From Magallana gigas (Eukaryota), in NCBI RefSeq assembly GCF_963853765.1, contig NC_088855.1:38316001-38380000 (forward strand): 64,000 nucleotides of DNA. Reading direction: 5' to 3'. A program made the translations under genes and the position numbers. The notes under the pieces were generated by a model, which made no database searches, had not been told where the DNA came from, and worked only from the letters and a program-made list of their open reading frames with translations. Every line of letters starts with the position of its first letter. Position 1 is the first letter of the stretch. Positions 3,001 to 9,000 of this stretch are shown here, one piece after another.

Positions 3001-6000
3001 TTCCTATACAAATTACAATATAAAGACATAGAGACAATGTTTTCTCTTGAAGAAACATAATTTTTAATCTTATTGGTGAATTTCATATAGGTCTGGTTCA
3101 GGTTGGCTCAAAGTAACTCCATTTGGTTTAAGAAAAGTATTGAACTGGATTAAAAACACCTACAGTAATATGCCAGTGTATGTAACGGAAAACGGCGTCT
3201 CAGACAGGAATGGGTCCCTCGTGGACTACCATAGAATTCACTTCTACAGATCGTACATAAATGAAATGTTAAAAGGTAATGTGAAGACTTAACTGTAATT
3301 ACCTAAACCAACACTCAGTTGAAATACATGTACATAAATTCATAGTAGAGTTTTCAATTAATTCGTCAGACCTTATGATTTTCAATAATAAAAAACACAT
3401 TGACATCTATTATAGCGTATACTAAATTATTTAAACAGATATTTTTGGGAGATTAAATTGAACTTTGCTGATAATTTGCAGCTGTGAAACTGGATAAATG
3501 TAACGTAAAGGGATACACGGCTTGGTCTCTCATGGATAATCTGGAATGGCGGGCAGGATACTCTGAGAAATTCGGCCTGCATTATGTCAATTTCAGCGAC
3601 CCGAACAGGCCACGCACAGGAAAACTGTCCGCTGAATTTTTTCGGCATGTCGTAAAAGATCATGGATTCCTCCAAGATTCATTGACCTCTCCAGGAAATG
3701 GTAATAAACTCGGAGCTTACAGAGAATTGAAGATTGCGGATGACGTATACCTTGGACAGTTTCCGAAAGATTTTATGTGGGGTATGGCAACTTCCGCTTG
3801 GCAAATAGAAGGAGGAAGGCATGCAGATGGTTAGCAAAGCTTCTTATGAATTGAAATAATTTTATTACATTTAGATGAGTCTGTAATCTGTAGTTCCAAA
3901 ATCAGTTATTAGATGTTTTTAAAATATCATTTTACATACATGTATTTTACCATTGTAGGCAAGGGAGTCAGTGTATTTGATTATGCATTGGAAGAGGGAA
4001 TCAAACGGAATATTTCATCTGAAATTGACTGGCCAAACAGTGCATGCGATAGTTATAATAAATATCTGGATGACGTCAGCTTGCTGAGGCAGATGAAAGT
4101 ACGAATATATATTTTTTGATATAGCGTGATAGTTCTATAATCCTATTTAAAAAGAGTTGGAAAATGATTTTTAAAACTTATTTCATCAGGTATCTCACTA
4201 CCGATTTTCTATATCTTGGAGCCGTATTTTACCGGACGGAACAACGGACAAAGAAAATCATGCCGGAATTGAATATTACAACAACTTGATTGATGCTCTG
4301 GTGGATGCAGGAATCGTTCCCATGGTTACTATGTACCAATCAGATTTACCCATGCATTTCTATTCTAATGGAGGTTGGGCGAATGACAGCATGATAGAGC
4401 ATTTTGAGAGATATGCAGCCATTCTGTTCCGCGAATATGGCGACCGTGTAAGTGAGAATAATGAAGTTGTGGTAAAATGAAGTTCAGTAAAAAAAGTACA
4501 TGCACTATTGTTTTAAGCTAGCACTGTCAATAAAGTTCTTAAAGTGGACGAAAGATAAGAAGAAGGCTTCATCGTAGTATCCTACATTGTAACTTCCAAG
4601 TTATACAAAACGTGTATTATATTATTAATAGATAAAACTGCAAATGCAATTTAGAAGGAAATTTAATTGAAATGTATGACATTTGTTGTGTTGTAAAGGT
4701 GAAGCATTGGGTTACTATCAACGACCCGTACAGTGAGTCGGAGATCAGTCTGGAACCTTACAAAGCAGCACACAACCTCATCAGAGCACACGCCAGGGTG
4801 TACCGCCTCTATGACAAAGATTACCGACCAAAGCAAAAAGGTTAAAAGATAGCCATGCATTCTTAAAACGTATAGAATACGAACTCTGCGAGTTTTAATT
4901 TCATCATATTCTTCGTTTGTCCTAAATGAATTTTCTATATGCACTCAGTTTTAAATTAACTTTTAACAATCATACTTTTTTACAAAATATATACTCGGTA
5001 CCTTTGTTCGAACGTATTTAATCAGAAACGAAAACTATTTTGTTAATCATTGCAGGAAAAATTGGCATATCTCTGCAGAGTAGTTGGTTCGAACCAAAGC
5101 GTCCGACCCACCCAGGAGACATAGCCGCACACAAACGGAGAACAGAACACACTTTAGGCTTATTTGCATACCCGATCTTTGTCAGTGGAGATTATTCTCC
5201 AATGCTTAGAAATATGACCGAGAAAAATGTATCTAAACCAGGAACCATCCTTCCTTTATTTACAGAATATGAAAAATCTATGATCAAAGGTGAATTTTAT
5301 GTACTTTATAGAAAGAACGAAATAATTATGCAAAAGATTAAAGCTTCTTAAAGCTAATGTATTTAATTTTACTGTGTAACGTTCTTCTTAACACGATTAA
5401 AAGTTTCGGATTTAAAAATCAAAATTATCCTTGACGGAGTTAACTTTCTTTTCATCAGGACATTTGTTTCTTTAATTCTTCATAGAAATTATATGTAAAT
5501 ATTTCTGTAGGTTCTGCCGACTTTTTTGGACTTAATTTCTACTCCACATACTACATTTCCGAATCCAATGAAATAGAGAGGGGTTTTGCTGTCCACACAG
5601 ACACTGTCAAATCTGTTGACTCCTCATGGAAAACGTACGCTCTTAGTAGATATCAATGCCTTTTTATATTAAAAAAAAACTGGATTAAATTTTACATTGC
5701 CAACCTTTTTTAATTATTTACCCGCTTTATTTCAAGGACCACATTTGGAAACTATGGAGCTGCTCAATATGGTCTTCGCAAAATGCTTAATTGGATCAAA
5801 GACAATTATAATAACATTCCAGTTTATGTCACAGAAAATGGGTACCCGGATGATACGGGCACTTTGAACGATTTTTCAAGAGTAGAAGTGCTTTTTGGGT
5901 ATATAAGTGAAGTTCTAAAAGGTACATTCTCTTCAATTTATTTTAGTTCGTGGTAGGCTGATATCTATTAATAGTTCACCAACATTAGAATAAAAAAAAA

Positions 6001-9000
6001 CTTTGGATTTATTTTACAGCCATTAAACTAGACGACTGTAATGTCATGGGATACACCGTTTGGTCTCTGATGGATGGCATTGACTGGAAATTCGGTTCCA
6101 AAGCTAAATTCGGGCTGTACCATGTAGATTTCAATGACCCCCAACTCCCTAGGACGGCCAAATTATCTGCCAAGATTTACTCGCAGATAATTGACCAGAA
6201 TGGGATAATTAGTGATATCAGAAATATCACAACGACTGACGTCAGTGGCAACAAAGAGAACGACCCATATAGAGCACTGAAGTACGAGGATGAGATGTAC
6301 TATGGAAAGTTTCCTGCAGGGTTTGCTTGGAGCTCGGCTACTGCATCCTACCAAGTCGAGGGGGCATGGAATGAAGATGGTATAACTATAAAACAAACGA
6401 ATTAAAATGTTACAGATATTTTGAATTCAAGATTTTGCGATCAAGCTTTTAATGAAGAAAAAAACCAGTATCATTACTATAAACAGGTATAGAATCTAAA
6501 AAACCCGTAGAAAACACATATTTTTATAATCAACGCAAATCTCTACATTGGTAGCTACGTTGAATTTTTAAAGATTGTCCCTACGAAATTTTTATTTTCC
6601 TAGGAAAGGGTCTTAGTATTTGGGACGTGTATTCTCATGCTGGACACATCGACAACAACCAGACAGGAGATGTGGCGTGTGATAGTTACCACAAGTACCT
6701 GGAAGATGTTCAACTTATCAAGAACTTGAAGGTAACAATTATTACATGCAAGTACTCTGATACAAAACAAAACAGCTAAAATATAAATAACTTATAAACT
6801 TGCAAAATGCGAAAGAAAACCGATGTATTTATATTTTTCTTCCCAGACCACTCACTACAGATTTTCGATTTCCTGGCCACGGATTTTACCAGATGGAACA
6901 ACCGACAATGTCAACTTTCTCGGCATTCAATATTACAACAATTTGATTGACGCCCTCATTGACGCTGGTATTGTTCCCATGGTAACATTATACCACTGGG
7001 ATCTTCCTCAAGCGCTGATGAAAAATGGAGGCTGGCAAGACGAGAAAACCTCGGATCTTTTTGCGGAATACGCTAGACTTTGTTTTACTCACTTTGGCGA
7101 CAGAGTAAGTTTATAAAAATTTTAAATGATTCACAATTAATTGAATTAAAGTGTATGTTTTTATAGAGAACATGTGTTCTTATACATTACAACTTATTTT
7201 TCAGGTGAAATTTTGGATCACTTTAAATGAGCCATGGGTTGTGTCGGTTCTTGGTTATGAAAATGGCGAAATGGCACCTGGAATAAAAGGGAAAGGAGAT
7301 CATTTATATATTGTTGCGCATAACCTTATCAAGGCCCATGCAAAAGCGTACAGACTGTATGAAAAGGAATTCAAAAGTAGTCAGAAAGGTATGAAAGCTT
7401 TGACCTACCATACAATTCAGGATCTTTAATTGATAAAGTTCTAAAGCCCTGCATGTACATTATACTAATAGGTGTAGTTGGAATAACCCTCAACACTGAT
7501 TGGATATTCCCTCAAAACGCCAGCGATCCCTTGGACACGGCCGCGGCAGATAGATCGGTGAACTTTATGTTTGGTTGGTTCCTCAATCCAGTGATGAAGG
7601 GCGATTACCCGGATGTTATGAAGAAACAAATCGACAGAAAGAGCCAGGAAGAAAATCTTGTCAAAAGTCGTCTGCCTGTGTTTACTGAGAGAGAGAAAAA
7701 TTTCATCAGAGGTACATATAGGCGTATTTAATAGAAGAGCTGCATAAAATCTGTGTATTTTGAAATGAATAACGTTTTTACTTTATATTTTTACAGGAAC
7801 CTACGATTTCCTAGGAATGAATTTCTACACCTCAAACGTAGCAACACACAAGGCGCAACCTGGTCAGGGTTACTTCACAGACGCGGACGTGGAAACGTAC
7901 AAAGACCCGTCGTGGCTCGGGTGAGTTAACCATTAACATAAACAGTACATGTACATAACCAGCCAAATCTCCTGTATATAGATGTCAATTACATCAACTG
8001 TCATTTGGATTTTAGATCGGGCTCAACCTGGTTGAAAGTCACACCTGTCGGAATTCGGCGGATGTTGAATTGGGTGAAATACACATACGGGGACTTTCCA
8101 ATATACATAACAGAAAATGGAGTTTCAGATAGGAATGGGTCGCTTCAGGATGACCACAGAATATCATATTATAGGCAATATATCAATAATGTCTTAAAAG
8201 GTGTGTTTGTTACTTATGATCGACAAGGGTATATTGTTAACGAAATTTTTAAAATAAATGAAATGGCCCTTCTTTTTATAATTTGCGTAATATAACATTT
8301 AATTTGCGGATATTTTTGTCTTAGCAATACGGTTGGATGATATTAACGTAAAAGGATACACTGCTTGGTCACTGATGGACAACTTCGAATGGGCCAGGGG
8401 GTATTCGGAACGCTTCGGTCTTCATTATGTCGATTTCAATGACCCCGAAAAACCAAGAATCCCCAAAGCAAGTGCTCTCTTTTACAAGAAGATCATCACT
8501 GACAACGGATTTGTAAAAGAGGACACGACAACGTCGCCGAGTTCCTCCGTATCTTTTCCTGAAAACGATCCTTACCGGGAGCTGAGTTATGAAGATGAGA
8601 TGTATTACGGGAGGTTTCCCTCAGACTTTGCCTGGAGCTCAGCGACCGCTGCTTACCAGATAGAGGGCGCTTGGAATGAAGATGGTACACATTAGATATA
8701 CATGTTCTATTGGCTAGGTTAATTACACAAATTCAGGGTTACAACGTACGCGTGTACAAGTCAGGGTATTATTTTCTGCGCATGTGATACATATACATTA
8801 TGAATAAGATGTACATGTATTAGAAAAGAGATGTATTATTTTACTCGAAAATTTTTTTCTACTTAAATACCTGGTGTATATTACAACCAAAAAATTCAAC
8901 GATACCGGTCGGAAATAAAAAGAATACTGGGCAAGTTAAGGAAAGCATTTTTGTTTTGCATTTTCTTTTTTACATTCGACGAATTTTTCGGTCCGTTTTT

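Follow-up and report, generated by a model that had tools for sequence, protein, structure and literature searches.

A putative pseudo-glycosidase barrel kept under purifying selection in two tandem six-domain GH1 genes of the oyster Magallana gigas

Why would a glycoside hydrolase family 1 (GH1) domain that carries an aspartate in place of its catalytic acid/base glutamate persist within an array of canonical GH1 domains? This question is raised by a stretch of 64,000 nucleotides (nt) of the Magallana gigas genome (NC_088855.1, positions 38,316,001 to 38,380,000 of the forward strand; hereafter the window), which holds two tandem genes resembling lactase-phlorizin hydrolase (LPH). Domain 4 of 6 in gene 1 (domain B, window positions 3750-6230, plus strand) and domain 4 of 6 in gene 2 (D4) both read Asn-Asp-Pro at the acid/base motif. 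A sequence-only reading of the window had proposed that this degeneration predates the duplication of the gene and that both copies have been retained for a selected function rather than left to decay. Here we compare domain B, D4 and their orthologues, together termed d4, comprising five sequences: B and D4 from the window and one sequence each from the species X, Y and Z, of which X and Y are far-diverged relatives of the window species and Z is a closer one (synonymous divergence, dS, of about 0.26).

The residue states on which the proposal was built are present in the DNA. Domain B carries TINDPY, TMYQSD at the site where canonical domains have His-Trp, a loop exon of 142 nt as compared to 184 nt in the canonical domains, an intact VTENG with the nucleophile glutamate, and WSLMDGIDW, each exactly where it had been reported. 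The exchange of Glu for Asp at the NFEW position, claimed for both copies, was confirmed at the codon level, and GISL as well as TE(N/A)G(Y/F)PDD(T/S)GTL are indeed common to B and D4. The loss of the His-Trp pair in B needs one qualification: The Trp-to-Ser exchange is common to the B-type copies, whereas the loss of His is specific to the window lineage and appears to be recent, because two B orthologues keep YHSD. D4-type copies read HYYD where B-type copies read Y(H/Q)SD. In alignments with solved GH1-like chains, the Asp at the acid/base position of B falls on the acid/base Glu, which in beta-Klotho KL2 is aligned within WITINEP. Exons 3, 5 and 8 of B match the Pfam family PF00232 (glycoside hydrolase family 1) above the curated cut-off, while exon 4 alone gave no PF00232 match; it is from the full-length alignment to the sibling domains only that we infer a (beta/alpha)8-barrel fold for B and D4.

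To place these domains within their genes, exon models were built from conserved intron phases and GT/AG sites, and 40 kb upstream of the window in the same assembly (G000) were added to complete gene 1. Both genes follow one plan, a signal peptide, next six GH1 domains and lastly a hydrophobic C-terminal tail; they are co-linear and free of stop codons over 2987 (gene 1) and 2980 (gene 2) residues. Gene 1 starts 8.1 kb upstream of the window, and its upstream part consists of a short signal-peptide exon and two canonical GH1 domains. The sequence-only reading had counted ten domains, four of them in gene 1; the actual number is 12, six per gene, two of those of gene 1 lying upstream of the window. 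The equivalent array position of B and D4 was correctly recognized, as both are fourth of six. The five siblings of domain B in gene 1 have all canonical GH1 motifs, and position 4 is the only degenerate one in either gene. The 124- and 360-nt exons, cited as a tie between B and D4, do exist but are not specific to this pair: Exons of 124 nt also occur in d5 and d6 of both genes and a 360-nt exon also joins d5 to d6 in gene 1, so these sizes show only the co-linearity of the genes. In protein searches of the whole 564-Mb assembly, whose counts are lower bounds, GH1 C-terminal exons were found only in C3:38300518-38358394, corresponding to at least 14 domains in three adjacent genes, and NDP-type loop exons only in B and D4.

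The common descent of the two domains, which had been put forward as a check by means of a tree, is well supported. In a tree of 49 rows B and D4 are sisters with a value of 100 in the Shimodaira-Hasegawa-like approximate likelihood ratio test (SH-aLRT), and in a later, careful tree the five d4 sequences form one clade (100/100), which splits into a gene-1 type (window, X and Y; 100/99) and a gene-2 type (window and Z; 100/100). Across these five sequences 184 of 442 columns (42%) are invariant, and in 16 of these the d4 state is absent from at least 8 of the 10 canonical sibling domains. Among the 16 are both Glu-to-Asp changes, confined within the two genes' 12 domains to B and D4, as well as GISL, EH, GDYS and G(Y/F)PDD(T/S)GT. 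The 100/100 clade and the 16 common derived columns, that is, both Glu-to-Asp changes and 14 further ones, show that the altered state arose once, before the tandem duplication of the six-domain gene, as had been proposed. Gene conversion as the source of the likeness between B and D4 is ruled out, since they are the least similar paralogous pair (51% identity).

The search in other species likewise bore out the earlier expectation, as the NDP domain is intact at the equivalent array position in X and Y (B-type) and in Z (D4-type). Orthologous genomic contigs were identified by exon-sized protein searches and their exons were then modelled; a 47-residue query of the NDP exon returned only two near-identical fragments owing to a word-index limit, and the distant orthologues came from a profile search with exon 3. 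Species X (loci L008 and L005) and Y (L009) each have a complete B-type domain between a d3-type and a d5-type domain, with the same 142-nt exon, W-I-T-(I/V)-N-D-P-Y, and DGIDR or DNLDW near the C-terminus; DGIDR is also found at the DGIDW site in the orthologue fragment P0151. Species Z (L010) has a complete D4-type domain with NDP, MHYYDMP, TEAG and DDVDY, and exon sizes and splice sites of d4 are conserved in all three species. As gene-1-type NDP copies are intact in X and Y, the duplication is older than their split from the window species. For the gene-2 type, exon 3 (AMHYYDMP) was also found in a distant species (P0170 and P0168), and NDP itself was seen outside the window in Z only. With regard to the deeper origin of d4, approximately unbiased (AU) tests rejected neither a clade with P0009, a Lymnaea protein with the two-domain layout of the sea hare enzyme akuBGL (p=0.37), nor a clade with d5/d6 (p=0.31); domain 1 of P0009 stands in a polytomy with d4.

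Two further proteins deserve mention. P0011 (MetaClust, 970 residues, two GH1 domains), which lies outside the d4 clade of the molluscs, reads WITFNDP and DGFEW in its first domain; its NDP appears as an independent Glu-to-Asp change at the acid/base position of an otherwise canonical domain. P0160, a Logan fragment of 66 residues, matches the linker part of B exon 8 at 73% identity, its changes being many and scattered (FFVGFVWSLVIVFY is one example); it could be a read assembly rich in errors or a decayed copy from a different individual.

The d4 domains are under clear purifying selection, somewhat weaker than that on their neighbours, and both copies have been kept since the duplication. 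For gene 2, the comparison of the window with Z (dS 0.21-0.27) gave a ratio of non-synonymous to synonymous divergence (dN/dS) of 0.152 for d4 (bootstrap 0.10-0.23; dS 0.26), 0.065 for d3 and 0.112 for d5. For gene 1, synonymous sites are saturated between the window and X or Y (proportion of synonymous differences, pS, 0.70-0.76), so that dN/dS of B itself is an upper bound only; here dN amounts to 0.17-0.22 for B, with 68-73% identity, and to 0.07-0.17 for d5. Between the paralogues of gene 1 and gene 2, dN is 0.42 for d4, as compared to 0.15-0.26 for the other five domains, which are 65-77% identical. Overall, the d4 protein evolves about 1.6-2.8 times faster than its sibling domains and is the fastest-evolving domain in both genes. 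In comparison with a contig of 98% identity, non-synonymous and synonymous changes number 9.5 and 5.5 in B and 2 and 7 in d5; these counts are small but agree in direction with the other comparisons. The proposal of a selected function rather than decay is therefore upheld as far as selection is concerned, by dN/dS and by the identity of the orthologues; the argument from the open frame is weak, because d5, d6 and the C-terminal tail would be lost as well if d4 acquired a stop codon or frameshift. Moreover, a selected function need not mean catalysis, as 8 of the 13 pocket positions considered below are free to vary.

Domain B is part of the mature mRNA in every RNA run examined. Exonic words of B occur in RNA runs labelled oyster or oyster metagenome, and four runs from at least three studies were analyzed over positions 3482-6379: All seven introns of B are of the GT..AG type and are removed exactly at the modelled sites, intron depth is zero, and no joint skips the domain. 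In the run available as raw reads, the first mates all lie on the minus strand, as expected for plus-strand mRNA in a standard stranded library. The NDP codons are free of variants in every run, including one under a second organism label. An assembly artefact as the source of domain B is ruled out by the RNA contigs together with four independent assemblies.

We then turned to the active-site pocket and considered 13 positions which we take to line the -1 and +1 subsites of GH1. The 10 sibling domains show no variation at any of the 13. In d4, by comparison, no more than five are constant: Gln in YQxEG, Asn in NxP, Asp at the acid/base site, the nucleophile Glu, and the Asp replacing the Glu of NFEW. 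This is no better than the background of 42% for the whole domain; the pocket His, three Trp, Tyr, Phe and the TENG Asn have either disappeared or vary from B-type to D4-type copies. Of the residues that bind the glycone in active beta-glucosidases (Gln, His, Asn, Tyr, Trp, Glu and Trp of NFEW, Phe), d4 retains Gln and Asn alone. All five d4 sequences have Asp at the acid/base and Glu at the nucleophile position, so that B departs from the T-x-N-E-P motif of GH1. In addition, the loop after the acid/base motif, which is located next to the aglycone site, has lost 15 residues in B and 10 in D4; in Klotho KL2 this loop is likewise short, and for this reason Klotho chains are the top matches of the loop exon in the PDB. 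From these residue states, the beta-glucoside pocket is probably gone and d4 is probably not a beta-glucosidase, while a small polar core of the pocket appears to be still guarded by selection.

How do these features compare with known proteins? In akuBGL, which consists of two GH1 domains, the first domain (GH1D1) has Asp192 for the acid/base Glu and keeps Glu404, with the two carboxylates 8.4 Å apart; its glycone-binding and catalysis-related residues are both unconserved, no activity was recorded with the nitrophenyl glucoside assayed, and a role as chaperone for domain 2 has been suggested (PMC10619976). Like d4, GH1D1 is a GH1 barrel within a tandem GH1 protein of the mollusc digestive system, a suggested helper of a catalytic domain, and a domain with Asp at the acid/base position (TIDDP, as compared to TINDP in B), a retained nucleophile Glu, and unconserved glycone-binding and catalysis-related residues. 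Unlike d4, it is domain 1 of 2 and not 4 of 6, has no loop deletion after the motif, and has also changed the Asn of NEP. Exon 3 of B scores higher against domain 2 of akuBGL than against domain 1, exon 4 of D4 higher against domain 1, and descent of GH1D1 and d4 from one ancestor is neither demonstrated nor rejected (AU p=0.37). In CjCEL1A, from the clam Corbicula japonica (Sakamoto et al. 2009, as described in PMC10619976), one domain is without catalytic and substrate-binding residues and is proposed to be a folding helper; going by this description, CjCEL1A resembles the oyster genes as a tandem GH1 protein with an inactive helper domain and differs from them in having two domains, the inactive one being the first.

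Similar in overall plan is LpMDGH1, a protein from Lyrodus pedicellatus, a shipworm, which has six GH1 domains, domains 1 and 3 being devoid of catalytic motifs; all six are kept in the mature protein, and the six-domain plan was deemed unique to shipworms (PMC5840672). Like the oyster genes, it combines a signal peptide with six GH1 domains, some of them without catalytic motifs, in a bivalve digestive enzyme; unlike them, its degenerate domains are 1 and 3, not 4, and it has no C-terminal hydrophobic or membrane segment. Domain 3 keeps NEP and has lost TENG, which is the opposite of d4; its FEWG, YASDLP and DGFEM recall FMWG, Y(H/Q)SDLP and DGID of B, a likeness that is suggestive, the motifs having been compared by eye. 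In vertebrate LPH, domains I and II, which make up the pro-region, are GH1 repeats that have lost catalytic residues and act as an intramolecular chaperone (as cited in PMC5840672). LPH and Klotho resemble the oyster genes in their tandem GH1 repeats, some of which lack catalytic residues, those of Klotho being receptor surfaces; Klotho KL2 shares with d4 a similarly shortened loop after the acid/base motif, and a vertebrate LPH among the matches listed has FSDL in domain I. The differences are equally clear: Domains I and II of LPH are cleaved off whereas d4 is situated between catalytic-looking domains, the Klotho repeats each lack a different Glu whereas d4 has a carboxylate at both positions, and neither Klotho nor LPH domains group with d4 in either tree.

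What, then, might d4 do? We favour, with about an even chance of being right, a non-catalytic structural or folding-helper module, that is, a pseudo-glycosidase serving the surrounding catalytic barrels. Domain B would be the fourth barrel of a secreted, LPH-like enzyme in which six GH1 domains are accompanied by a hydrophobic tail at the C-terminus; the GH1 module would have lost its beta-glucosidase pocket once, before the six-domain gene duplicated in tandem, the duplication would have preceded the split of several oyster lineages, and both d4 copies would then have been kept by purifying selection because they aid the folding or structure of the neighbouring catalytic barrels, as proposed for GH1D1 of akuBGL, domain 1 of CjCEL1A and the pro-region of LPH. 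Descent, conservation, selection, expression and residue states of d4 are established, and we infer the absence of activity and the scaffold or chaperone role. Several observations weigh against such a module. Across a split of 51% identity, all five d4 sequences keep the nucleophile Glu, the acid/base Asp, Gln, Asn and the second Asp unchanged; a pure scaffold does not obviously need these five fixed polar residues, which could reflect ligand binding or residual chemistry. Furthermore, B keeps more of the pocket than D4 (the Tyr of NFY, the Trp of WSL, TENG, and the final Trp), and the two domains may not be doing the same thing. Finally, the ratio of non-synonymous to synonymous polymorphism (pN/pS) in B is 0.45, from about 15 changes, a constraint clearly weaker than that on d5.

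The invariant polar residues could instead belong to a binding module, in which the remodelled pocket holds a sugar, polysaccharide or peptide uncut and either feeds the neighbouring barrels or docks a partner in the manner of Klotho. The pseudo-active site of beta-Klotho reportedly binds a sugar-mimicking motif of FGF21 (Lee et al. 2018), and the best PDB matches of the loop exon are Klotho KL2 domains with a similarly shortened loop; moreover, the nucleophile segment GLRK.LNWIKD.Y.N..VY.TE.G.PDD.GT is among the best conserved in d4. We nevertheless consider binding rather unlikely, since conservation at the 13 pocket positions does not exceed that in the remainder of d4, the aromatic platforms that normally stack on sugars are lost or drifting between B and D4, and the ligand is only hypothetical. 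An enzyme of new specificity, in which Asp acts as acid/base and the second Glu-to-Asp exchange together with the lost aromatics enlarges the -1 and +1 sites to admit another, or a bulkier, glycoside, would agree with the nucleophile Glu and the carboxylate at the acid/base position in every copy, with two conservative exchanges that were fixed before the gene duplication and the later species splits, and with a dN/dS far under 1. This is improbable in our view: GH1D1 of akuBGL combines the same Asp/Glu pair with inactivity on the test glucoside and widely spaced carboxylates (PMC10619976), D4 is also without the nucleophile-supporting Tyr, the Asn of TENG and the Trp of WSL, and B-type and D4-type copies disagree at His, Trp and the +1 Trp, which a fixed specificity would not tolerate. 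Its narrower form, a working GH1 enzyme with an Asp acid/base and a -1 site enlarged by the second Glu-to-Asp exchange, conserved since before the duplication, strikes us as quite improbable; if true, it would represent a previously unrecognised GH1 specificity class hidden in a six-barrel digestive enzyme. There is, lastly, hardly any room for a decaying relic that stays open only because truncation would cost the downstream catalytic domains and whose sequence is otherwise free to drift. The frame is enforced by d5, d6 and the tail, d4 evolves fastest, and the pN/pS of B is elevated, all of which a relic would show; opposed to this are the upper bound of 0.23 on dN/dS, the 42% of columns that are invariant across the 51%-identity split, the 16 fixed derived states, and the exon sizes and splice sites retained by X, Y and Z. 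Neutral decay is ruled out by the dN/dS of 0.15 for D4 and by the 68-73% identity of the B orthologues at saturated synonymous sites.

Domain B appears as a further instance of something already known from akuBGL, CjCEL1A and LpMDGH1, namely non-catalytic GH1 modules, and opens no new class of biology. It has a signature of its own (NDP and xxDW with the nucleophile kept), an array position of its own, and a well-documented selection history. The six-barrel GH1 polyprotein is not confined to shipworms, as the oyster has two such genes in tandem, in which one barrel would have become a pseudo-glycosidase ahead of the duplication, selection having since preserved it in both copies. B, D4 and their orthologues thus provide a clean natural pair for asking what silent GH1 barrels contribute, be it help in folding, substrate handling or something else, with five polar pocket residues singled out as apparently still guarded by selection. 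For annotation and enzyme mining, domain counts in "LPH-like" genes of molluscs would overstate the number of active sites. The coordinates of the two genes and of both d4 domains are compiled in Table 1.

Table 1. Positions of gene 1, gene 2, domain B and D4 (window coordinates unless given with G000).
Feature	Position	Strand	Size and sequence features	Evidence
Gene 1, 5' part (loci L001, L003)	G000:C3:38307873-38316072			
Gene 1, part within the window	3-14640			
Gene 2	21421 to ~42550	+	signal peptide, 6 GH1 domains, tail	
Linking exon: gene 1 domain 3 C-terminus, linker, domain B N-terminus	3482..3829	+	FPKDFMWG of B from ~3750	exon model; RNA joint 3829>3959 in 4 runs
Domain B exon 2	3959..4098	+	140 nt; GVSVFD vs canonical GPSIWD	RNA joints 3829>3959, 4098>4190
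Domain B exon 3	4190..4447	+	258 nt; TMYQSDLP	Pfam PF00232 E=3.9e-33; RNA joints
Q-S of TMYQSD (H-W in canonical domains)	4337-4342			
Domain B exon 4, shortened loop exon	4699..4840	+	142 nt	codon check; 142-nt NDP exon in orthologues
N-D-P	4720-4728		AAC GAC CCG; Asp (GAC) 4723-4725 at acid/base position	
Domain B exon 5	5056..5289	+	234 nt; GISL, EH for QF, GDYS for GDYP	PF00232 E=1.3e-06; RNA joints
Domain B exon 6	5511..5634	+	124 nt; LNFYS (Tyr kept in B, Ile in D4)	RNA joints
Domain B exon 7	5737..5921	+	185 nt; +1-site Trp lost	RNA joints
T-E-N-G	5831-5842		nucleophile Glu codon GAA 5834-5836, in VTENG	
Linking exon (exon 8): B C-terminus, linker, domain 5 N-terminus	6020..6379	+	360 nt; WSLMDGIDW	Pfam E=4.7e-24
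D-G-I-D-W	6073-6087		Asp codon 6082-6084	
Gene 2 D4, paralogue of B	33182..35545	+		clade with B; codons checked
D4 exons	33182-33303, 33417-33674, 33783-33936, 34033-34254, 34364-34487, 34797-34981, 35186-35545	+		
D4 motifs			NDP 33804-33812; MHYYDMP; TEAG 34891-34902; DDVDY 35239-35253	

The third of the adjacent GH1 genes is oriented head-to-head with gene 1 and occupies G000:C3:38300515-38306228 on the minus strand (loci L004 and L001). Each of its two domains carries NE(P/A), TENG and NFEW-type motifs, and the second reads NEA like domain 2 of akuBGL; the layout of this gene is thus the two-domain one of akuBGL and CjCEL1A, although its first domain is canonical. Within the six-domain genes, gene 1 d3 (window 3-3829) clusters with the d2 pair (96/92) and not with gene 2 d3 (29138-33096), which suggests a domain-level conversion or replacement after the gene duplication. 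The C-termini of both genes (14265-14640 and 42210-42550) consist of a stretch rich in Pro, Thr and Ser followed, at the very end, by a hydrophobic tail of about 20 residues, which looks like a membrane anchor or a glycosylphosphatidylinositol (GPI) anchor signal.

Several peculiarities of intron structure were observed outside d4. Two introns were lost independently: Exons 4 and 5 of gene 2 d1 are fused (window 23523-23949), as are exons 3 and 4 of gene 1 d2, which form a single exon of 445 nt in the upstream locus L003. Apparent GC donors, for which no in-phase GT donor fits, occur at 13468/13469 (AAG|GCAGGT; gene 1 d6 exon 5) and at 39852/39853 (AAG|GCAAGT; gene 2 d6 exon 2). In gene 1 d6, the intron that separates exon 3 from exon 4 is unusually long, at about 3 kb (window 9896-12952).

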